Shown piece by piece: positions 5,709 through 14,427 of a stretch of 64,000 bases of DNA. The position numbers were made by a program, and so were the translations under genes. Positions within the stretch are counted from its first letter, which is position 1, and each line of letters begins with the position of its first letter. The notes below the pieces were generated by a model. The model made no database searches, was not told the DNA's origin, and saw only the letters and a program-made list of their open reading frames with translations. The DNA is taken from positions 62,001 through 126,000 of IMG/VR virus record IMGVR_UViG_3300045051_000720; one strand, written 5' to 3'.

Positions 5709-7100
5709 ATGGCCTTCGGCAATCACTCTCGCCCGCGCGGCACCCGTGTCAACGGGGCTTATGTTCCCAACCCCGGTATCGCGCGGTTGTGGGAGGATTT
5801 CAAGGCATATGCCTCACCCCTCGGGTTTACACCCGATCAATGGCGATTCACCGAGGCGTTCTTCACCGGTCGCAACGTGTGTTTGTTGGGTCGAGCGGGT
5901 ACAGGCAAATCGTATGTGCTCAAGGCGCTGTTCGAGTACCTGACCAAACAGAAAGTGTCGGTGGGACGCACGGCCACGACTGGCGTTTCGGCGTTTGGGA
6001 TAGGTGGTCAAACGATCCATTCGTGGGCGGGGTTGGGTCTTGCGGACGAACATTCCGAGGCTATCATCGCGTCCATCCAGAAGAAGGGCAAGGTCAAGGC
6101 GCGGATTCGCGCGGCGCAGGTGTTGTTCATTGACGAGGTCTCGATGGCCAAGGCCGATCTGATGGACAAGCTGGATGCGGTGTTGCGCTATTACCGTGAC
6201 TCGGGCGATCCTTGGGGCGGCGTGCAAGTCGTTCTCTGCGGGGACTTTTTGCAACTTGCACCAGTCTTCAAGGGTGACGAGACCCAAGCCTTCGCTTTCC
6301 ACTCGGCGGTCTGGGATGAGGGTAACGTGCGTACCATCGTGCTCCAAAAGGTCGTTCGCCAGCAGGGCGATAATACGCTTTTGTCCATTCTCAACGACGT
6401 GCGCGTTGGCAATACCGATTCGCTCCATCTGCTGGACAGCCGGGTGGGCGCGACATGGCCCGACAACGAAATCGAGGCGGTGAGAATCTTCTGCAAGAAC
6501 ATTGATGTCGACGGGTACAACCGCGAACGCATGGCACAGCTCACCAGCGCCGCGAAGACCTACACTGCGCGCGATTCGGGCGAGTCTTTTCACACGGACA
6601 CGTTCAACAAGAACTGCCCCGCGCCGCAGGTGTTGGAGCTGAAGGTGGGGGCGCAGGTGCTCCTTGTTGCCAATCTGGATGTCCAGAGCGGCTTTGTGAA
6701 CGGTAGCGTAGGCATCGTCAAGGCTTTTGGTCCGAACGGGGTGACGGTCAAGTTCACCCAAGGTACGACCGTCGTCGAGCATAACGAGTGGACCATCAAG
6801 GAGCAGGCGGTCGGGATGGATGGCAAGATCATCTATCGCACGGTCGCCACGCGCCGACAGATCCCGCTCAAGGTGTGCTATGCGGTGACTACTCACCGGG
6901 TCCAAGGCATGACGCTGGACCGTGCGATTATTGACATGACGGAGGCCTTCACGACCGGGCAGGTGTACACCAGCCTGAGCCGTGTGCGTGATTTGGAATC
7001 ACTCTCGCTTGCCAGCGCCATTCCCCACTCGGCGATTCGAGTCAATCCCGAGTGCGTGGCGTTCTACGAGGAAGCGGAGCGGGCGGAGAACCCGTTTTAA
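5709..7100 (+). CDS. PIF1-family SF1B DNA helicase
   Basis: GRAGTGKS, IDEVSM, GDFLQLAPV, LKVGAQV, QGMTLD and GQVYTSLSR motifs; start moved to the ATG downstream of the promoter. Confidence 0.93.
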   Translation: MAFGNHSRPRGTRVNGAYVPNPGIARLWEDFKAYASPLGFTPDQWRFTEAFFTGRNVCLLGRAGTGKSYVLKALFEYLTKQKVSVGRTATTGVSAFGIGGQTIHSWAGLGLADEHSEAIIASIQKKGKVKARIRAAQVLFIDEVSMAKADLMDKLDAVLRYYRDSGDPWGGVQVVLCGDFLQLAPVFKGDETQAFAFHSAVWDEGNVRTIVLQKVVRQQGDNTLLSILNDVRVGNTDSLHLLDSRVGATWPDNEIEAVRIFCKNIDVDGYNRERMAQLTSAAKTYTARDSGESFHTDTFNKNCPAPQVLELKVGAQVLLVANLDVQSGFVNGSVGIVKAFGPNGVTVKFTQGTTVVEHNEWTIKEQAVGMDGKIIYRTVATRRQIPLKVCYAVTTHRVQGMTLDRAIIDMTEAFTTGQVYTSLSRVRDLESLSLASAIPHSAIRVNPECVAFYEEAERAENPF

Positions 7101-8528: not shown

Positions 8529-8577
8529 GGTGAGTGAGGGGCTAGAGTTAGGGTCTTTGTGTGATCTGATGGGAAAA

Positions 8578-8665
8578 TGGCGGAAGCGAGAGGGCACGAT
8601 CCCCAACGCACGAGTCGTCCTGCGGTGTAGCACACCGTGGCAGTCGCCTGACTGCTTTCGCTTCC
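8578..8665 (-). tRNA. tRNA-Ser(GCT)
   Basis: Cloverleaf, long variable arm, G73-CCA. Confidence 0.8.
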
Positions 8666-8666
8666 G

Positions 8667-8755
8667 TGGCGGTAACAAGTGGGGTTCAACCACTGTGCAA
8701 TGAAGCACACTCTGGGTTTCGGGTCCAGTCGAGGAAAACGTCCTCAGTTGCTACC
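8667..8755 (-). tRNA. tRNA-Ser(CGA)
   Basis: Cloverleaf, long variable arm, GCCA end. Confidence 0.75.
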
Positions 8756-8842
8756 GGCGGAGTGGTGCCGTACTGCCCGGCTGCCGGTTGCCCGACACAA
8801 CGCTTTCCAAGCGCCGTCCACCTCTAGGTGGCCCAACCCTCC
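8756..8842 (-). tRNA. tRNA-Ser(GGA)
   Basis: GGCGC-TTGGAAA-GCGTT anticodon arm, long variable arm, bulged acceptor stem. Confidence 0.72.
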
Positions 8843-8875
8843 AAAAAGATACAGACCCGAGCGGGGTCTGTAAAG

Positions 8876-8969
8876 TGGCGGTGAGTTGAGATCTTGCGTC
8901 CCAAGGCGGGGTTGGCCCTCCTCCATTCGCTTTCAAGGCGGCGGCAGCGCCTCGGCTGCTTAACTCACC
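8876..8969 (-). tRNA. tRNA-Ser(TGA)
   Basis: CTTGAAA loop, long variable arm, GCCA end. Confidence 0.8.
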
Positions 8970-8973
8970 AAAG

Positions 8974-9049
8974 TGGTGCGGACACCCCGAGTTGCACGGG
9001 GACTATCCCTCGTTAGGACCGAGGTTGACTGTCTGTTGCCGATGTCCGC
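8974..9049 (-). tRNA. tRNA-Arg(CCT)
   Basis: CCTCG-GTCCTAA-CGAGG arm, ACCA end. Confidence 0.82.
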
Positions 9050-9537
9050 GAAAAATACTTGTCGCGCTCGACGGTGCGGCGACCCAGCTCTGCGCTGAGG
9101 AAGGCTGTCATCTTGCCGTTGTGACTCATGAGCTTGTCGGCCCACCCCACCATCAGCTGGTTGGGGCACACAAACGGTCCGCGCGCGTTGACGATCAGTT
9201 GGTAGGCATCAGAGTAAGGTATCCTGTGGTGGACCAGCCAGATGAAGGCTGCTGCGCTTGACCGCGATACGCCTGCGAAGCAGTGAAAGAGGATGGACTG
9301 GTCGGGGCTGGTTTGGGCGTAGACACCCAGTAGCCGCCGTATCATCGCCTCTGTGGGAGCGAGAGGGTTGGACGAGTTGCCCGTATCAGCGAACACAAAT
9401 GAGTGGAGAGTGAAGGGGTACTTGAACGCTCGGATGTCGGGGCCGGGTTGGTGGACCTCGTGGAAAGAGATGATGTGGTCCAGCAGAACCGTCGCGAAGG
9501 CAGGAACCTCGGAGACGCCACAAATAGCGAAGGGCAT
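9013..9537 (-). CDS. Cys-dependent (dual-specificity / tyrosine) phosphatase
   Basis: HCFAGVSRS P-loop, FAD acid loop and PN motif; own promoter at 9543-9571. Confidence 0.9.
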   Translation of the reverse strand: MPFAICGVSEVPAFATVLLDHIISFHEVHQPGPDIRAFKYPFTLHSFVFADTGNSSNPLAPTEAMIRRLLGVYAQTSPDQSILFHCFAGVSRSSAAAFIWLVHHRIPYSDAYQLIVNARGPFVCPNQLMVGWADKLMSHNGKMTAFLSAELGRRTVERDKYFSRTSATDSQPRS

Positions 9538-9572
9538 AGCCGATGCTAGTCCGTAATGAGGGCGCTGTCAAG

Positions 9573-9665
9573 TGGCGCGAACGGCAGGATTCTCACCCAC
9601 ATCAGGGCCGAGCGGCCCTTCACCTGCGTTCGAAGCGCAGTTGACGCTATTATGTCGGCGTTCGC
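9573..9665 (-). tRNA. tRNA-Arg(TCG), long variable arm
   Basis: CTGCG-CTTCGAA-CGCAG arm, GCCA end. Confidence 0.8.
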
Positions 9666-9666
9666 A

Positions 9667-9755
9667 TGGTCTCGACGGCGAGAGTTGCACTCGCAGATTG
9701 GCTTGCGCCAGACGGTTTAGAGGACCGTTGCCTTGTCTACCCGAGCCCCGTCGAG
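9667..9755 (-). tRNA. tRNA-Arg(TCT), long variable arm
   Basis: ACGGT-CCTCTAA-ACCGT arm, ACCA end. Confidence 0.75.
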
Positions 9756-9760
9756 GGAAA

Positions 9761-9837
9761 TGGCGCGAGACCGGGGATTCAAACCCCGACTGATCCTCGT
9801 TCGCAACGAGGGCGACTATTCGGTTGCCGAGTCTCGC
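9761..9837 (-). tRNA. tRNA-Arg(GCG)
   Basis: CCTCG-TTGCGAA-CGAGG arm, GCCA end. Confidence 0.82.
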
Positions 9838-9932
9838 AAAGAGATTGCACCGTCCCCAGTCGATGCGTCGCTGGGGAGCAGGACACCAGTAGGACATCGC
9901 ATTAGTCCACCCGGAGATTCCACGGTGCAAAT

Positions 9933-10007
9933 TGGGGCGCACGACCGGATCTACCCCGGCCCTCCAAGCGTCACAGGCTCGGGTGCTTCTACTACACTAC
10001 GTGCGCC
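9933..10007 (-). tRNA. tRNA-His(GTG)
   Basis: G-1:C73 pair, CTGTGAC loop. Confidence 0.85.
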
Positions 10008-10013
10008 ATAAGG

Positions 10014-10089
10014 TGGAGCTTCAGTAGGGGTTCTCACCCTCCTCTCTCGGATACAAGCCGAGGCCATCGAATGTCTATGGGTCTGAAGC
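10014..10089 (-). tRNA. tRNA-Thr(TGT)
   Basis: CTCGG-CTTGTAT-CCGAG arm, CCA end. Confidence 0.82.
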
Positions 10090-10093
10090 GAAA

Positions 10094-10167
10094 TGGAGCC
10101 GAGGACCGGTAACGCTCCGGTGTCTATCGTTTACGAAACGATGGCTCTGCTTTTGAGCTACCAAGGC
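10094..10167 (-). tRNA. tRNA-Thr(CGT)
   Basis: ATCGT-TTCGTAA-ACGAT arm, CCA end. Confidence 0.85.
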
Positions 10168-10171
10168 AAAG

Positions 10172-10247
10172 TGGTGGTCCCGGGAGAGCAACGATCCTCC
10201 ACGTCACGCCTATAAAGCGCGCAGTCTGCCGATTAACTTACAGGACC
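10172..10247 (-). tRNA. tRNA-Ile(TAT)
   Basis: CGCGC-TTTATAG-GCGTG arm, ACCA end. Confidence 0.78.
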
Positions 10248-10361
10248 AAAAGGAGGGCATCGGAATCATCTCGGCGCGCAGTGTGCACCTTACGATCCGT
10301 CAGCCCTATAGGTGGTTTGTTTACGAGACGGTGCGTTTAACGACACAGGGCGCAAACGAAA

Positions 10362-10481
10362 TGGTTCCACGGCTCAGGTCGATCAACCCCACCTTTGGCC
10401 AGCCACCTCAGCGAGGTTTGGTAGCTCGTTAGGCCCTTCGCTTCTGACGCCTCCAGTTGGATTGCCCTCAGTGACCGTGAA
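10362..10481 (-). ncRNA. Oversized tRNA-like RNA (120 nt)
   Basis: TTCACGG/CCGTGGA acceptor-like stem plus ACCA; internal arms non-canonical. Confidence 0.45.
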
Positions 10482-10484
10482 AGA

Positions 10485-10570
10485 TGGTGGGCGTGGAGGG
10501 ATGCGAGCCCTCAAGGACAACGGAATTTGAACCCGTCGCTTCTACCAGTTTCGCTTTCGTCCACACGCCC
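10485..10570 (-). tRNA. tRNA-Leu(CAA), atypical architecture
   Basis: ACGGG-TTCAAAT-TCCGT arm; extra GGACG/TGTCC pairing. Confidence 0.8.
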
Positions 10571-10572
10571 GA

Positions 10573-10655
10573 TCGGCATGGTGGGATTCGGACCCACAGG
10601 GGATAGCGCATTTTAAGTGCGCCGGTTGTCGCCAGTTTCCCTTATCCACATGCCG
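10573..10655 (-). tRNA. tRNA-Leu(TAA), atypical architecture
   Basis: GCGCA-CTTAAAA-TGCGC arm; extra GGATA/TATCC pairing; CCA not encoded. Confidence 0.8.
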
Positions 10656-10661
10656 GTAAGA

Positions 10662-10736
10662 TGGTGGGACCATGGAGCCAACGCACTCCAATCTCCGCGC
10701 TGAGAACGCGGCGAACTACTCTTATTCGATGATCCC
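10662..10736 (-). tRNA. tRNA-Glu(CTC)
   Basis: CCGCG-TTCTCAG-CGCGG arm, ACCA end. Confidence 0.82.
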
Positions 10737-10737
10737 G

Positions 10738-10820
10738 TAGGCGTGGAGAGATTCGGACTCTCAAGGACACGTGATCCTAAGTCACGCGGTTCTGCCAATT
10801 TCCCTTCCGTCCACACGCCC
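10738..10820 (-). tRNA. tRNA-Leu(TAG), atypical architecture
   Basis: CGTGA-CTTAGGA-TCACG arm; extra GGACG/TGTCC pairing. Confidence 0.8.
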
Positions 10821-10826
10821 ATAAAA

Positions 10827-10917
10827 TGGTGGCCTCGGGGGGAGTCGGACCCCCACGCTACTATGATTTCGCTCGCGAATCTCATTCGCGCATGTCTACC
10901 AGTTCCATCACGAGGCC
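10827..10917 (-). tRNA. tRNA-Leu(GAG)
   Basis: Class II cloverleaf, ATGAGAT loop, ACCA end. Confidence 0.85.
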
Positions 10918-10994
10918 GAGGTCCCAGTCGGAGTTGCACCGACCCTGTTCGTCATTACCAATGACGCGCCGTGGCTACACTCGGCATTGGGACC
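10918..10994 (-). tRNA. tRNA-Thr(GGT)
   Basis: CGTCA-TTGGTAA-TGACG arm. Confidence 0.82.
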
Positions 10995-10999
10995 ATAAA

Positions 11000-11076
11000 T
11001 GGGGGCTCAGGTCAGATTTGCACTGACGACCGTCTCCGTATGGGGGAGCCGCGCTAGCTAGCTGCGCCACTGAGCC
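11000..11076 (-). tRNA. tRNA-Met(CAT) elongator (Ile2 not excluded)
   Basis: CTCC-CCCATAC-GGAG arm, CCA end. Confidence 0.72.
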
Positions 11077-11077
11077 G

Positions 11078-11153
11078 TGGTGGTCCCGTCGAGATTCGCA
11101 CTCGCCTCATCCGATTAAGAGTCGGAGTCCTCGCCTATCTAGGAGTCGAGACC
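11078..11153 (-). tRNA. tRNA-Lys(CTT)
   Basis: TCCGA-CTCTTAA-TCGGA arm, ACCA end. Confidence 0.87.
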
Positions 11154-11161
11154 GTAAAGTA

Positions 11162-11452
11162 TTCAACCGCGTAGCCGCGTTTCTGTTGCCGGGCCATCCC
11201 GACCGACATCCATTTCTCTCACCCACGGTCACCCGTGAACGGGTATCGTTTATAGACACCTGCACCAACCACGCCCTGCTTGACGGCCAGAACTAGCCTC
11301 GGGCTCCATTTGGCTTGCTGGTATCGTGTGGTTATCGCGAGTGTCTACCGACGTAACATCGTCGGGACTGCTCTCCCATCGACTTCTGTCCAGACGCGAA
11401 CTTGACCTCTACGCACGCATCGAGTGCGCGGCAGCGGATGTCTGCGGTTGAA
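11162..11452 (-). ncRNA. rnpB: RNase P RNA (compact, ~290 nt)
   Basis: P1 TTCAACCGC/GCGGTTGAA; P2 GACATCC/GGATGTC; CR-I GAGGTCAAGTTCGCGT pairing with CR-V AACAGAAACGCGGCTA (P4); CAGCAAGCCAAAT; GAGAGAAATG. Confidence 0.85.
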
Positions 11453-11455
11453 AGA

Positions 11456-11530
11456 TGGTGGAGGTACCGAGTGCCGCCCTCGGGCTTGAGTCATGCCATG
11501 ACCCTGTGCTGCTGTTATCACTATACCCCC
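11456..11530 (-). tRNA. tRNA-Ala(GGC)
   Basis: G3:U70 pair, ATGGCAT loop, ACCA end. Confidence 0.87.
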
Positions 11531-11604
11531 GCTGCCTCGGAGCGAATTGCACGCCCACCTAACACCTTCAGAGGGTGTCGGACTAGCTGTTATCCCACGA
11601 GGCA
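11531..11604 (-). tRNA. tRNA-Gln(CTG)
   Basis: U1-A72, ACACC-CTCTGAA-GGTGT arm. Confidence 0.85.
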
Positions 11605-11638
11605 AAAGTGATAGGGGTGACAAAACTGACCCGTCATT

Positions 11639-11709
11639 GGGTCAGTAGTGTAGTGGTAGCACGTCCGCCTGACTGGCGGGGGGCGCGGGTTCAAATCCCG
11701 TCTGATCCA
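11639..11709 (+). tRNA. tRNA-Val(GAC), inverted relative to the array
   Basis: Canonical GTGT-AGTGGTA-GCAC D arm and GGTTCAAATCC T loop on the + strand. Confidence 0.72.
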
Positions 11710-11715
11710 TTTAAT

Positions 11716-11791
11716 TGGCTGCCCACCACGGATGACAGCCGTGACCCTCGCCTTCAAAGGGCGGTATGCTTGACGTTTACATCAATGGGCA
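11716..11791 (-). tRNA. tRNA-Gln(TTG)
   Basis: CTTTGAA loop, GCCA end. Confidence 0.82.
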
Positions 11792-11798
11792 ATGAGAG

Positions 11799-11876
11799 TG
11801 GTCGGCGTGGAGGGATTCGCACCCCCGATCCTTCGCTTCCGGAGCGAGCATGTTGGCTAGGCTACACCACACGCCG
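11799..11876 (-). tRNA. tRNA-Pro(CGG)
   Basis: C1-G72, TCCGGAA loop, ACCA end. Confidence 0.85.
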
Positions 11877-11977
11877 ATATTGCGGGCCGGTTATCCATCC
11901 GGCGGCACCCGGCTTGATGGTGAGCAAGACGGAGACTCTGGAATTGGCGTGATTTTATGGCTCACGCCGCCGCAAAA

Positions 11978-12055
11978 TGGTCCTCGCGGCAGGCTTCGCT
12001 CCTGCGGCCTTCTGCATGTCGTGCAGCCGCTCTAACTGGGCTGAGCTACGCGAGG
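11978..12055 (-). tRNA. tRNA-Val(GAC)
   Basis: CTGC-ACGACAT-GCAG arm, ACCA end. Confidence 0.82.
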
Positions 12056-12060
12056 GAAAG

Positions 12061-12138
12061 TGGTCGGGCCAGTTGGATTCGCACCAACGATCTCATGCTC
12101 CCCGAGCATGCGCGATGACTAGGCTACGCTATGACCCG
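12061..12138 (-). tRNA. tRNA-Pro(GGG)
   Basis: CATGC-TCGGGGA-GCATG arm, ACCA end. Confidence 0.87.
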
Positions 12139-12237
12139 ATTGGCAGATACCGTCTGTTACTCCCACCGTGGTGTCCCGTCTGCCGCGGGGCTTTAGGTGG
12201 TGTTTGGGTAATCCAAACGTCTCGTGAACGGCTAAGA

Positions 12238-12336
12238 TGGCTGTACCGGTAGGAGCCGCCCCTACACCGCCGCAGGTCATGCGTACGGGCTCGCTTAACA
12301 GGCGAGTGCAACGAACGTGCTATTTGCCTCGGTACA
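12238..12336 (-). tRNA. tRNA-Asn(GTT), long variable arm
   Basis: CTCGC-CTGTTAA-GCGAG arm, GCCA end, 99 nt. Confidence 0.78.
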
Positions 12337-12342
12337 ATAAAA

Positions 12343-12418
12343 TGGTCGTCGCTGAGGGACTCGCACCCCCGAACCTCTGCGTGTAGGGCAGGTACCGTAG
12401 CTGCTGGGTCAAGCGACG
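12343..12418 (-). tRNA. tRNA-Val(TAC)
   Basis: CCTACAC loop, ACCA end. Confidence 0.82.
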
Positions 12419-12422
12419 AAAG

Positions 12423-12499
12423 TGGCGCGATAGATGGGTGCTGCCCCCACTTGTCTCGGCATAGACAGTGCCGCGAGCATGCTGTTGCTCTTCTACCGC
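12423..12499 (-). tRNA. tRNA-Asp(GTC)
   Basis: CGGCA-CTGTCTA-TGCCG arm, GCCA end. Confidence 0.85.
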
Positions 12500-12501
12500 G
12501 T

Positions 12502-12573
12502 ACGGATGGAGGGACTCGCACCCCCGTTATGTCCGGTCCCAAACCGGAAGCCATTGCTGCTAGGCGACATCCG
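12502..12573 (-). tRNA. tRNA-Pro(TGG)
   Basis: TCCGG-TTTGGGA-CCGGA arm. Confidence 0.8.
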
Positions 12574-12580
12574 TGTGAAA

Positions 12581-12653
12581 TGGATGCAGGGCCGAGGAAT
12601 CGCACCCGGTCAGGGCGACGGGTATGAACCGCGCTTGGTCTAACCTCCCTGCG
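12581..12653 (-). tRNA. Initiator-like tRNA-fMet(CAT) with reduced D arm
   Basis: C1:A72 mismatch, TTCATAC loop, CCA end. Confidence 0.7.
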
Positions 12654-12660
12654 TAAAGTG

Positions 12661-12810
12661 TTCCCTTTGTAGGCGTGCTCCAACGCCTCGTTGTTTGTCA
12701 AAATGGCCGGTGCTCTACCGTTGAGCTAGCATCCTCCTTGCGAAGGACCGCAGGTGTCGAACCTGTATCTCCGGCAAGTGTTACCTTGCGGGCTTTTGAC
12801 CTCTAGGGAA
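12661..12810 (-). ncRNA. YrlA-like Y RNA (circularly permuted tRNA-mimic domain on a long stem)
   Basis: T arm (CAGGTTCGACACCTG), then closed acceptor stem, then D arm (GCTCAACGGTAGAGC), enclosed by GCCGG/CCGGC, GTCAAAA/TTTTGAC and TTCCCT/AGGGAA stems. Confidence 0.72.
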
Positions 12811-12812
12811 AG

Positions 12813-12885
12813 TGGTGGAGCCCCGGGCATCGCAGCCCAACGACAGCCGGATTTTCAGTCCAGCCCGTGCACTCGCACTGACTCC
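12813..12885 (-). tRNA. tRNA-Phe(GAA)
   Basis: CTGGA-CTGAAAA-TCCGG arm, ACCA end; short D arm. Confidence 0.72.
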
Positions 12886-12943
12886 GGAGCCATCGTTAGG
12901 TCCGCCGATGGCGCAGGCGGTCTCGGGTTATTGACGAGGAAGA

Positions 12944-13020
12944 TGGGACGGACGGTGGGTAGCGCGCCCACATGAAGCCGGATTTGGAGTTCGGTGCCTT
13001 ACTTGTCGAGCCACGTCCGT
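12944..13020 (-). tRNA. tRNA-Trp(CCA)
   Basis: CTCCAAA loop, CCA end. Confidence 0.8.
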
Positions 13021-13195
13021 ATGAAAAGGTGGAGCGAAGAGATGGTCATTTATTCACCGGGCTGGGACCAATCCACGAGGTGCCCGATCCAGATGTCTCC
13101 TGCCTCGCTCCGTTTGGAGACCAACGAGTGATGTGGTGTCAGGTTCCTGTAGGCTTCACTGACACCGACCCGCGGCGTGAACCGCGAGGTGAAGA

Positions 13196-13269
13196 TGGTG
13201 GTCAAGTCGGGTGCTGCCCCCGCGTCTAACGGTTATCGACCGTTGGCTCTACTGTTGAGCTACATGACC
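13196..13269 (-). tRNA. tRNA-Ile(GAT)
   Basis: AACGG-TCGATAA-CCGTT arm, ACCA end. Confidence 0.87.
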
Positions 13270-13399
13270 AAAATTGCTGTCGCGGTCAACCCGCGTTTCG
13301 GCTCAGCTTGGCCGTTTGCAAAATGGCGACTACGTTAACCAGTCTTGACCGGAGGCGTGCTTGCGGGCGCGTCGTAGCCCGTTGGGTATTAGCCCAAAG

Positions 13400-13491
13400 T
13401 GGTGGACCCGGAGGGAGTTGCACCCCCGACGCCCCGTTAGGGGTCCAGATTTACAGTCTGGTGCAGCCATCTGACAGCTACCTCGTGGTCC
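13400..13491 (-). tRNA. tRNA-Tyr(GTA)
   Basis: CCAGA-CTGTAAA-TCTGG arm, long variable arm, ACCA end. Confidence 0.85.
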
Positions 13492-13497
13492 GAAAAA

Positions 13498-13572
13498 TGG
13501 AGCGTCGTGCGGGACTCCCACCCGCGTGTGTCTGCTTGGAAGGCAGATGCCTTGGTTCTCGGCCAACGACGC
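13498..13572 (-). tRNA. tRNA-Gly(TCC)
   Basis: TCTGC-CTTCCAA-GCAGA arm, TCCA end. Confidence 0.87.
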
Positions 13573-13632
13573 ATGGGGTTTATCGCCACCGCGGAGCGGC
13601 TGATTGGTTACAGCGGGGTGGAAGCCCCAAGA

Positions 13633-13707
13633 TGGTGGAGTCAACGAGATCCGCCCTCGTATGTCACGGATGCAAACCGTGTGCCTTTCTATGTCGGCCA
13701 TGACCCC
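13633..13707 (-). tRNA. tRNA-Ala(TGC)
   Basis: G3:U70, CACGG-TTTGCAT-CCGTG arm. Confidence 0.87.
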
Positions 13708-13709
13708 AT

Positions 13710-13781
13710 TGGACCCGGCGAGTGCCGCCCTCGCGCCTCCGCGTTGCGAACGCAGCGTGCTACTGTTGTCACCACGAGCCC
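13710..13781 (-). tRNA. tRNA-Ala(CGC)
   Basis: G3:U70, CTGCG-TTCGCAA-CGCGG arm. Confidence 0.85.
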
Positions 13782-13786
13782 GAAAA

Positions 13787-13967
13787 GAGTGACACGATAG
13801 ACTTGTCCGGCAGTCTGGGGAGTCTTGCGGGACTCCTATGGCCTAAACCACGTCTTACGCCGCCTCTTGCCTTAACGCGCGGCCCTTTCCCTTGCGGGTA
13901 CTCAGGGGCTCATCGGCTGTGGATAGAGGACGGACTGTTGGTCCGGGTAGTATCTATCGTGTTGCCC
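13787..13967 (-). ncRNA. 6S-RNA-like rod (~180 nt)
   Basis: Closing stem ACACGATAGAT/GTCTATCGTGT, internal stems, central bubble with 3-prime hairpin GGAGTC-CCGCAA-GACTCC. Confidence 0.45.
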
Positions 13968-14053
13968 CGGTTAGGATCGACTCCGCCGAGGCGAAAAAGG
14001 ATGCCGGACCCCAGCTTTCGCTTGCGGGCGTCCCCTCGCGGGTCCGACGTAAG

Positions 14054-14129
14054 TGGAGGCGCGCCACGGTGCTGCCCCGTGCAAACAGTGTTTTGCAAAC
14101 ACGTCTCGTCGCTGGCTGAGTCGCGCGCC
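14054..14129 (-). tRNA. tRNA-Cys(GCA)
   Basis: TTGCAAA loop, U73-CCA. Confidence 0.85.
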
Positions 14130-14176
14130 ATTGAGCTAACCACGCCAAGGGGGACCAACAGGTGTCGCTCAGGAAA

Positions 14177-14252
14177 TGGTGGGTCCATCGGGCATCGATC
14201 CCGCTTCCACGGTTTAAAAGACCGCTGCTAATCCGGCTACAGCTCTGGACCC
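14177..14252 (-). tRNA. tRNA-Lys(TTT)
   Basis: GCGGT-CTTTTAA-ACCGT arm, ACCA end. Confidence 0.85.
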
Positions 14253-14254
14253 AT

Positions 14255-14326
14255 TGCGGGTAGGGAGACTTGCGCTCCCCTCTCAGCCTTGGCAAAGCCG
14301 TGCGTCGCTATCTACGCTTCACCCGC
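14255..14326 (-). tRNA. tRNA-Gly(GCC)
   Basis: CGGCT-TTGCCAA-GGCTG arm. Confidence 0.82.
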
Positions 14327-14427
14327 GAAAAGTGTCCGATGGGAGAACTGTCAAACCCCCTATGCCCTATGCGCATGGCGTCTCGTTGGTCGGACCCAAC
14401 GGCAGGTATCGATCCTGCGAACATGAC

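Follow-up and report, generated by a model that had tools for sequence, protein, structure and literature searches.

Three leucine tRNA genes of an uncultured phage from the rhizosphere, with the anticodons UAG, UAA, and CAA, possess a secondary structure of five helices, in which two three-way junctions replace the single four-way junction. The additional helix, here called helix X, joins the four nucleotides that directly follow U8 to those at the start of the variable region (GGAC or GGAT with GTCC or ATCC), and in comparative terms its covariation supports it as well as the canonical stems of these tRNAs are supported. The five-helix tRNA-Leu is a family and not a one-off. We consider it likely, with a probability of about 0.8, that the three genes encode functional leucine tRNAs which form a structural type of their own; their charging, decoding, expression, and three-dimensional arrangement are inferred. 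The cloverleaf, with its single four-way junction, is regarded as universal among tRNAs of the bacterial type; a 2024 paper states that every known bacterial tRNA conforms to it (PMC11551756), and a 2023 review of tRNA identity attributes a long variable arm to tRNA-Leu everywhere except in animal mitochondria (PMC9976931).

Three Leucine tRNA Genes in a Phage tRNA Array

The window, the whole stretch of 64,000 nucleotides that was analyzed, is part of a 219,464-bp IMG/VR virus record (rhizosphere metagenome; 59% GC) whose completeness is estimated at 96% by CheckV. A dense tRNA array occupies its minus strand at about 8570-14330, and within this array the interval 10485-10820 contains four tRNA genes, Leu(UAG), Glu(CUC)-like, Leu(UAA), and Leu(CAA), all on the minus strand (Table 1). 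The Glu(CUC)-like gene is called by neither ARAGORN nor Rfam, and it had been left out of the original prediction, which covered the same interval. Leu(UAA) is separated from the next gene by a spacer of 2 nt.

Table 1. Leucine tRNA genes of the five-helix form, the strands of their helix X, and the neighboring tRNA genes (window positions).
Feature	Positions	Strand	Basis and remarks
tRNA-Leu(UAG), five-helix	10738-10820	-	Manual parse; R1 89.9 bits; 82 nt + A73, CCA not encoded
Leu(UAG) helix X, 5′ strand GGAC	10809-10812	-	Directly after U8 (10813); facultative fifth nucleotide G 10808
Leu(UAG) helix X, 3′ strand GTCC	10765-10768	-	Pairs with 10809-10812; covariation
tRNA-Glu(CUC)-like	10660-10735	-	Manual parse; between Leu(UAA) and Leu(UAG); outside the five-helix family
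tRNA-Leu(UAA), five-helix	10573-10655	-	Manual parse; R1 91.7 bits; 82 nt + A73, CCA not encoded
Leu(UAA) helix X, 5′ strand GGAT	10644-10647	-	Fifth nucleotide A 10643
Leu(UAA) helix X, 3′ strand ATCC	10601-10604	-	T 10605 pairs with A 10643; linker CCT 10598-10600
tRNA-Leu(CAA), five-helix	10488-10570	-	Manual parse; R1 86.2 bits; 82 nt + A73, CCA encoded at 10485-10487
Leu(CAA) helix X, 5′ strand GGAC	10559-10562	-	Fifth nucleotide G 10558
Leu(CAA) helix X, 3′ strand GTCC	10515-10518	-	T 10519; linker TT 10513-10514
tRNA-Leu(GAG), ordinary class II	10827-10917	-	ARAGORN; Rfam 43.7 bits; fourth Leu tRNA of the phage

Read from the 5′ end, all three genes consist of a 7-bp acceptor stem, T8, GGAC or GGAT with one further nucleotide, a linker of 0-2 nt, and a D arm of the leucine type (AGG or AGC, the loop GAAAYTGGNAGAA, then CCG or GCG). 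The anticodon arm follows without a preceding spacer, and after it come one nucleotide, GTCC or ATCC, a linker of 2-3 nt whose last nucleotide is T, the T arm, and the 3′ strand of the acceptor. For example, in Leu(UAG) the acceptor stem GGGCGTG/CACGCCT is followed by T8, the anticodon arm reads CGTGA-CTTAGGA-TCACG, and the subsequent TGTCC, of which T 10769 is a position-44-like nucleotide, leads to the T arm through a TT linker (10763-10764) that ends in U48. The standard stems are thus present, namely a 7-bp acceptor, a 5-bp T stem with a 7-nt loop, and a 5-bp anticodon stem with a 7-nt loop, U33, and a purine at position 37. The distance from the acceptor to the anticodon stem amounts to 26-27 nt, as against the usual ~19-21, and the variable region is only 7-8 nt long and forms no hairpin, which does not meet the class II criterion of a hairpin and at least 10 nt. 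The connector between the acceptor and the D stem measures 6-8 nt, four of which are paired to the variable region; a canonical 2-nt connector (positions 8 and 9) and a four-way junction are hence not met either.

The original prediction had stated that Leu(CAA), Leu(UAA), and Leu(UAG) lack the class II variable hairpin, that an insertion in each is complementary to the variable region (GGACG/TGTCC, GGATA/TATCC, and GGACG/TGTCC, respectively), and that the neighboring Leu(GAG) is a normal class II tRNA. All three statements held on the minus-strand parse. The complementary segments were confirmed at 10808-10812/10765-10769 (UAG), 10643-10647/10601-10605 (UAA), and 10558-10562/10515-10519 (CAA), and Leu(GAG), which is recognized by ARAGORN and Rfam, has a variable region of class II length (19 nt) and scores only 30.9 bits with R1, the covariance model described below.

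The T loops of the window copies are deviant, being TCCGAAT (C55) in Leu(UAG) and Leu(UAA) and CTCGCAT (C54, C58) in Leu(CAA). Odd T loops are common to most tRNAs of the window phage, and a missing CCA is also seen among its ordinary tRNAs.

Collection of a Homologous Family

Since three paralogs cannot settle whether the complementarity is real or due to chance, a search for homologs was needed. The collection patterns made use of the D loop and the T loop only, with neither strand of helix X constrained. With such a pattern, the same architecture was found in 23 viral contigs, all of which have complementary strands, and in metagenome contigs at least 120 loci were obtained. A covariance model, R1, was built from 22 sequences and picked up more divergent neighbors. 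Furthermore, a structure-blind scanner, which asked for an acceptor stem, a T arm, a leucine anticodon arm, a long 5′ region, and a short variable region and never required the pairing of helix X, yielded 85 clean distinct members, to which two were added by hand. The family comprises about 87-89 distinct homologs, which come from over 50 contigs of viral and metagenome origin that vary in GC content, and it falls into two length subtypes, one with a 5-nt insert and an 8-nt variable region (as in the Leu(UAA) of the window) and the other with 7 nt in both places (as in its Leu(UAG) and Leu(CAA)). A scan for the TCCGAAT T loop of the window revealed no further five-helix genes.

Comparative Evidence for Helix X

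Helix X is paired in 96.0% of the cells of a MAFFT alignment built from 87 distinct sequences. The corresponding values are 100% for the acceptor, 97.1% for the D, 95.4% for the anticodon, and 93.3% for the T stem. Of the four pairs of helix X, three have undergone changes on both sides. In a model-guided alignment of 89 distinct sequences, 98.6% of the cells of helix X are paired. There, pair X1 is GC in 85 and GU in 4 sequences; X2 is GC in 77, GU in 8, AU in 2, and UA in 2; X3 is AU in 79, CG in 5, GC in 1, and otherwise in 4; and X4 is UA in 56, CG in 27, UG in 4, GC in 1, and otherwise in 1. About a dozen fully paired versions of the helix occur across the family: GGAC/GTCC, GGAT/ATCC, GGAT/ATTC, GGAT/GTCC, GGCC/GGCC, GGCC/GGTC, GGGT/ACCC, GGCT/AGCT, GAAC/GTTT, GACT/AGTT, and, with 5 bp, GTAGT/ACTAC and GTATC/GATAC. 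Intermediates with one mismatch are few, such as GGAT/ACCC (A.C), GGTC/GTCC (U.U), and GGAT/TTCT (U.U, locus L373); single mismatches were recorded as A.C in L169 and L407 and as U.U in L394.

All four core pairs are formed in 78 of the 87 sequences, and when the 3′ strands of helix X were shuffled among the sequences, this value was reached in none of 5000 shuffles (mean 55.6, maximum 63). Sliding the 3′ partners of all 23 pairs by 1-3 columns lowered the overall pairing from ~97% to 36-49%. RNAalifold, unprompted, predicted exactly the five helices, and in the mutual information of the MAFFT alignment, columns 57, 56, and 55 are the best partners of columns 11, 12, and 13. Compensatory changes are present in all five helices. 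One caveat lies in the composition of helix X, whose outermost pair never departs from G-C or G.U and whose third pair is A-U in ~88%, so that for much of the helix the sequence is conserved along with the pairing.

Next to the anticodon stem, a fifth pair is standard in 52 of 76 members and mismatched in the other 24 (G.A, A.C, A.G, etc.). Helices of 5 bp exist in L332, L360, and the three genes of the window. The fifth pair resembles the 26.44 pair of ordinary tRNAs. The enclosed D arm has a normal 3-bp stem of the leucine type, with the 10.25 pair usually A.G, and in the three genes of locus L138 this stem consists of three covarying Watson-Crick pairs (GAG/CTC, CCG/CGG, and CCA/TGG).

With regard to the remaining claims of the original prediction, covariation of the pairing held in the enlarged alignments of 87-89 sequences, and the enclosure of the D and anticodon arms between two three-way junctions held at the level of secondary structure. 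The claim of a 5-bp helix between the connector strands held in part, for the conserved portion is 4 bp and the fifth pair is facultative. A covariance model of homologous tRNA-Leu, part of a check proposed there, was built (R1), and the comparative evidence supports the helix.

It could be argued that no extra helix exists, and that these genes encode class-I-like leucine tRNAs with an enlarged 8-10 connector and a variable loop of 7-8 nt, the complementarity being a by-product of sequence conservation or of another pairing, for instance one with the T arm. Three observations speak for this reading: GGA and TCC are strongly conserved in sequence, GTTC and ATCC of the invariant T arm are also complementary to GGAC and GGAT, and helix X seldom appears in thermodynamic ensembles. 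Against it, several versions of helix X are unable to pair with the T arm (GGCC/GGCC, GGGT/ACCC, GTAGT/ACTAC, and GTATC/GATAC), the partners with the highest mutual information are the proposed ones, and pairing collapses when partners are slid. In nearest-neighbor folding, the five-helix model of the three window genes lies 5-6 kcal/mol above the minimum free energy (MFE), with low ensemble probability for the pairs of helix X. This is weak evidence against the helix because the ordinary tRNAs of the same cluster misfold in silico as well, their own cloverleaf lying 0.8-9.3 kcal/mol above the MFE. We regard the absence of the helix as very unlikely. A further candidate, in which the 5′ insert pairs with the T arm (GTTC/ATCC), was rejected, since variant inserts cannot form it and the T arm would be broken.

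Leucine Identity and the Tertiary Core

The canonical tertiary core of tRNA is built on the contacts U8.A14.A21, A15.U48, G18.55, G19.C56, and T54.A58. Across 87 sequences of the five-helix family, T8, G19, A20a, A21, C56, and A73 are invariant, and A14 (95%), A15 (98%), G18 (92%), U48 (99%), and T54 and A58 (both within 92-99%) are nearly so. In Escherichia coli, the set of leucine identity elements for leucyl-tRNA synthetase (LeuRS) comprises A73, A15-U48, G18G19, and A20a, and the long variable arm is dispensable, arm-less variants being active (PMC9976931). This bacterial set is fully kept in the five-helix family as far as sequence conservation goes; recognition by LeuRS is an inference. 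G18:U55 and U54:A58 matter for leucylation in E. coli, yet the T loops of the window deviate at these positions.

Specificity for leucine is evident throughout the family. Anticodons of the 85 members are exclusively those of leucine (UAA in 42, CAA in 27, UAG in 15, and GAG in 1), the anticodon loops are intact with U33 and a purine at 37, CCA is encoded in 77 of the 85, and 22 loci carry two or three isoacceptors. Among 542 tRNA-like elements, the five-helix architecture was found in 67 leucine tRNAs as against one non-leucine element, which looks unrelated. In the window phage, the four leucine tRNAs together cover all six leucine codons, and UUA, UUG, and CUA make up 29% of its leucine codons (174 ORFs). 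Moreover, a related soil phage carries the five-helix Leu(UAG) without listed differences, and 12 substitutions are seen in the class II Leu(GAG) next to it; as sequence evidence only, this comparison is listed in support of purifying selection on the five-helix Leu(UAG).

These data bear on the possibility that the genes are decaying pseudogenes or functionless tRNA-like remnants. In favor of this reading, standard tools miss the genes, the T loops of the window copies are odd, and two of the three lack an encoded CCA. On the other hand, the form has been conserved in over 50 contigs that differ in GC content, and compensatory changes occur in each of the five helices. The anticodon loops are undamaged and carry leucine anticodons only, the odd T loops and the missing CCA are shared by the ordinary tRNAs of the window, and the related soil phage copy is without listed differences. 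Decay therefore appears very improbable. The available sequencing runs offered no usable RNA evidence, and the runs labeled as RNA in which words of the region recur probably consist of DNA.

That these tRNAs work, and are charged and used in decoding, is inferred. The window phage encodes neither a LeuRS nor a CCA-adding enzyme, and therefore the enzymes of the host must serve. The host itself could not be inferred from the phage helicase and ribonucleotide reductase, for which no close named relative was found. Leucylation would be carried out by the LeuRS of the host, which would rely on A73 and the conserved core, the variable arm not being involved in bacteria such as E. coli. On the ribosome, the UAA and CAA tRNAs would read UUA and UUG, and the UAG tRNA would read CUA and CUG in phage genes. 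Some LeuRS enzymes are known to charge tRNA-Leu without a long variable arm, and the E. coli enzyme fails to charge the type I tRNA-Leu(CAA) of Streptomyces coelicolor (PMC6614811); because of this rejection, not every bacterial LeuRS can be taken to accept a tRNA-Leu with a short variable region.

Inferred Geometry of the Five-Helix Form

The outer end of helix X begins directly after U8 and is 2-3 nt, the last of them U48, away from the T stem, and its inner end is connected to the D stem by a linker of 1-3 nt and to the anticodon stem by 0-1 nt. Given that the canonical core nucleotides have been retained, a normal L-shape is the simplest model. In this model the D stem would stack on the anticodon stem as usual, and helix X would lie alongside the D stem in antiparallel orientation, with the U8/U48 layer at one end and the 10.25/27.43 layer at the other. 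There it would fill the space of nucleotide 9 and the base triples of the variable loop, where the arm of class II tRNAs is rooted. We infer this to be the most likely arrangement, and an alternative stacking cannot be excluded from sequence.

In such an alternative, helix X takes over the position of the D stem in a coaxial stack with the anticodon stem, leaving the D hairpin as a side arm that extends to the T loop. The junction on the 3′ strand is only 0-1 nt long, and the junction lengths permit either stacking. The count of layers also agrees, 4 bp, the fifth pair, and 5 bp giving 10, as do the D stem, the 26.44 pair, and the anticodon stem of an ordinary tRNA, and the fifth pair of helix X behaves like 26.44. 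In addition, two of the three L138 members lack G18G19, suggesting that contact between the D loop and the T loop is perhaps dispensable. On the contrary, the conservation of U8, A14, A21, A15, and U48 at 95-100% fits a canonical core with the D stem under U8.A14 and A15.U48, and the 3′ strand of the D stem enters the anticodon stem without an intervening nucleotide. We therefore hold coaxial replacement to be unlikely.

Distribution, Annotation, and Earlier Descriptions

BLAST of the region against 50,697 phage records gave no match, and BLAST with AT-richer homologs matched only neighboring ordinary tRNAs. When the D-loop/T-loop pattern was run over one genome per species for 185,579 prokaryote species, 42 loci were returned, of which only one (L281) scores with the model. 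This locus, with three copies, is on a 4,136-bp contig that has been binned in a Phycisphaeraceae metagenome-assembled genome, and the contig is likely a phage fragment. The cultured phages Tunturi_5, Mwe-JY26, AP-16-3, S-SRM01, and Cece were searched whole with the model and no five-helix gene was found, their leucine tRNAs being only of the ordinary short-variable or class II kind. The family is thus widespread and almost confined to phage-like contigs.

Standard annotation largely overlooks these genes. ARAGORN calls none of the three in the window, and with the Rfam tRNA model (RF00005; gathering threshold 29 bits) Leu(UAG) scores 20.9 bits, Leu(UAA) 23.5 bits, and Leu(CAA) has no match. 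Over the family, ARAGORN gave an output for 9 of 87 members and never the correct ends and anticodon together, and the Rfam threshold was reached by 5 of 15 members from seven loci.

The original prediction knew of no such topology elsewhere, which agrees with the open-access and preprint literature that was searched. No open-access paper or preprint was found to describe a five-helix tRNA-Leu, characteristic sequence strings of the family are absent from the searchable papers of both kinds, and reviews of non-canonical tRNAs and tRNA identity, together with an abstract on allo-tRNAs, mention neither such a helix nor an arm-less phage tRNA-Leu. As judged from this literature, the five-helix tRNA-Leu is apparently an undescribed structural variant; an earlier description elsewhere is not excluded.

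Relation to Known tRNAs and Possible Origin

The five-helix form shares with the bacterial class II tRNA-Leu its leucine anticodons, A73, U48, the 7/5 acceptor and T arms, and a leucine-type D arm with a 3-bp stem and the loop GAAAYUGGNANAA (A14, A15, G18G19, A20a, A21). Unlike class II tRNA-Leu, it has no variable hairpin and carries instead 4-5 nt inserted between U8 and the D stem. A long variable arm is also missing from the type I tRNA-Leu(CAA) of S. coelicolor and from animal mitochondrial tRNA-Leu (PMC6614811). However, type I tRNA-Leu is an ordinary cloverleaf with a 5-nt variable loop (A44-C48), a 2-nt 8-9 connector, and no extra helix, and its criteria of a 4-5-nt variable loop and a normal connector are not met by the five-helix form, in which a variable region of 7-8 nt pairs with a connector of 6-8 nt. 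Other phage tRNA-Leu with a reduced arm (L078, L079, Tunturi_5, and Mwe-JY26) are ordinary cloverleaves with variable loops of 5-10 nt; these resemble the S. coelicolor type I and do not belong to the five-helix type.

Departures from the cloverleaf, presumably with an L-like shape, are also known in tRNA-Sec, tRNA-Pyl, allo-tRNAs (8/4 and 9/3), and armless mitochondrial tRNAs (PMC7609411, PMC5389517). These change the lengths of stems or drop arms, and none adds a helix between connector and variable region. Moreover, the allo-tRNA and tRNA-Sec configurations (8/4, 9/3, 8/5, and 9/4) are not met, the arrangement being 7/5 in all five-helix members.

The evolutionary origin of the form is a matter of inference. 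The variable arms of several class II phage tRNA-Leu, such as TGTCC-GAAA-GGACGT and TGTCC-ACAA-GGACGT, carry the same two strands as helix X of the window, in which the 5′ strand is GGAC and the 3′ strand GTCC is preceded by T and followed by TT. A GUCC/GGAC arm is also present in E. coli tRNA-Leu. As a hypothesis, helix X may derive from the class II variable-arm stem through a shift of the 3′ strand into the 8-10 connector.

Possible Purpose of the Form and Its Implications

The safest statement on the purpose of helix X, which is again inferred, is that it would serve as a structural substitute that keeps the core rigid in the absence of the variable arm. A rival account of the purpose, which is possible, invokes counter-defense: a remodeled, arm-less core would escape tRNA nucleases or toxins that recognize class II tRNAs and would still be charged. 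It addresses the reason for the form and does not conflict with the structural explanation. Evasion of tRNA-targeting defenses by phage tRNAs is an established theme (PMC10264068, PMC11464382), the window phage encodes the tRNA-repair ligase RtcB, which adjoins the five-helix trio in L187, reduction of the variable arm arose in several forms in phage tRNA-Leu, and the family is practically absent from cellular genomes. Against counter-defense, the literature covered contains no nuclease that selects bacterial tRNA-Leu by its variable arm, bacterial Schlafen cuts the anticodon arm at 30/31 and has not been reported to be specific for type II tRNAs (PMC13056530), ordinary class II leucine tRNAs coexist in the same phages (Leu(GAG) of the window; L033, L078, and L088), and RtcB is common in large phages anyway. 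A link of bacterial Schlafen to the five-helix tRNA-Leu, considered as a candidate, is unsupported by that publication (PMC13056530).

A bolder reading, which we put forward as no more than a possibility, sees in these genes a third structural class of elongator tRNA with a “split variable arm,” in which the arm stem of class II has been rewired to draw one strand from the 8-10 connector, and which phages would have evolved and kept to preserve recognition by LeuRS and the ribosome while dropping features that defenses recognize. What is removed or changed would be the protruding arm, or the core, that host tRNA-targeting defenses or other host factors recognize.

For the annotation of phage genomes, the blind spot of tRNA finders would mean that phage tRNA repertoires and analyses of codon supply undercount leucine tRNAs. 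Since bacterial LeuRS ignores the anticodon, the five-helix form is possibly a new scaffold for orthogonal or suppressor tRNAs. If the main reading is true, a helix can stand in for base triples or for the variable arm when the core of tRNA is rebuilt, and the family would provide a natural test of how far LeuRS, RNase P, the CCA-adding enzyme, EF-Tu, and the ribosome tolerate an altered core, and possibly a new front in the conflict between phage and host over tRNAs.

Leucine tRNAs in Related and Other Phages

When window positions 10737-10920 were compared with a 1,179-nt contig from soil metagenome run X2, the pair formed by Leu(UAG), which belongs to the five-helix family (tRNA-Leu with a helix between the 8-10 connector and the variable region in place of the class II arm), and class II Leu(GAG) was found to be present in this related phage as well. 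All 12 substitutions listed for the region compared fall within Leu(GAG), which leaves Leu(UAG) without any listed substitution. Separately, tRNA-Leu genes with an ordinary cloverleaf and a variable loop of just 5-7 nt, here called "type I" Leu, occur in both cultured and uncultured phages, and in the record of the cultured phage Tunturi_5 the two that were checked are both unannotated.

Other tRNA-like Genes, RtcB Ligases and tmRNA

Several further tRNA-like genes lie in the window's array (Table). The tRNA-Glu(CUC)-like gene has a T loop of apparently 8 nt and received no call from ARAGORN or Rfam. The class II-like tRNA has G as its discriminator and a long variable arm that forms a hairpin (GGGCC-GCTC-GGCCC), and its anticodon, UCG, reads CGA, an Arg codon; an Arg anticodon here sits on a Ser-like body, which could point to recoding or to mis-parsing. 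The 95-nt element has a variable region of 24 nt and no recognisable D arm, and the 85-nt element combines a short variable hairpin with the anticodon loop CCTCTAA, in which position 33 is C.

RtcB-type RNA (tRNA) ligases are encoded by the window's phage and by contig L187, the latter 58% identical to the RtcB of Tunturiibacter phage Tunturi_5. In addition to five-helix genes, the phage contigs bearing this family encode tmRNA, as well as tRNAs that resemble amber suppressors, with a CUA anticodon that ARAGORN labels Pyl.

Features discussed in this part, with locations (L-numbers are compared phage or metagenome contigs)
Feature	Location	Strand	Remark
"Type I" Leu	PP885688.1 231669-231744, 232112-232186
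"Type I" Leu	PP438418.1 211-285
"Type I" Leu	L078:9592-9669, 9764-9841
"Type I" Leu	L079:6375-6452, 6613-6690
tRNA-Glu(CUC)-like	window 10660-10735	minus	between Leu(UAA) and Leu(UAG)
Class II-like tRNA	window 9577-9665	minus	UCG, 89 nt
Long tRNA-like element	window 12242-12336	minus	GUU, 95 nt
Long tRNA-like element	window 9671-9755	minus	85 nt
RtcB-type ligase	G000:C1:131160-132473		window's phage, outside the window
RtcB-type ligase, second	L187:6719-7924		directly adjoins five-helix Leu trio
tmRNA	L033:2039-2422, L088:5523-5903, L138:5705-6146, L139:4278-4660
Amber-suppressor-like tRNA	L033:10182-10256, L078:661-736		CUA
tRNAs without U55 (examples)	window 12065-12138, 11803-11876, 11004-11076, 10920-10994	minus
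Five-helix Leu without G18G19	L138:1198-1278, 1285-1366	minus

T Loops and D Loops

The near-universal U55 of the T loop is missing from most tRNAs of the window's phage (window 8570-14330, minus strand), the loops reading TGCGAAT, TGCAAAT, TGCAACT, TCCGAAT, or TCCGACT. This absence is odd in its own right, and the poor sensitivity of ARAGORN and Rfam on these tRNAs is attributed to it. G55 or C55 is also found in 10 of the 87 five-helix family members, these from other phages. Two five-helix Leu tRNAs on L138 have CAG or CCAG in place of G18G19, with a clean 3-bp D stem and T loops of TGCAAYT; it is possible that the D-loop/T-loop contact is different in some members of the family.
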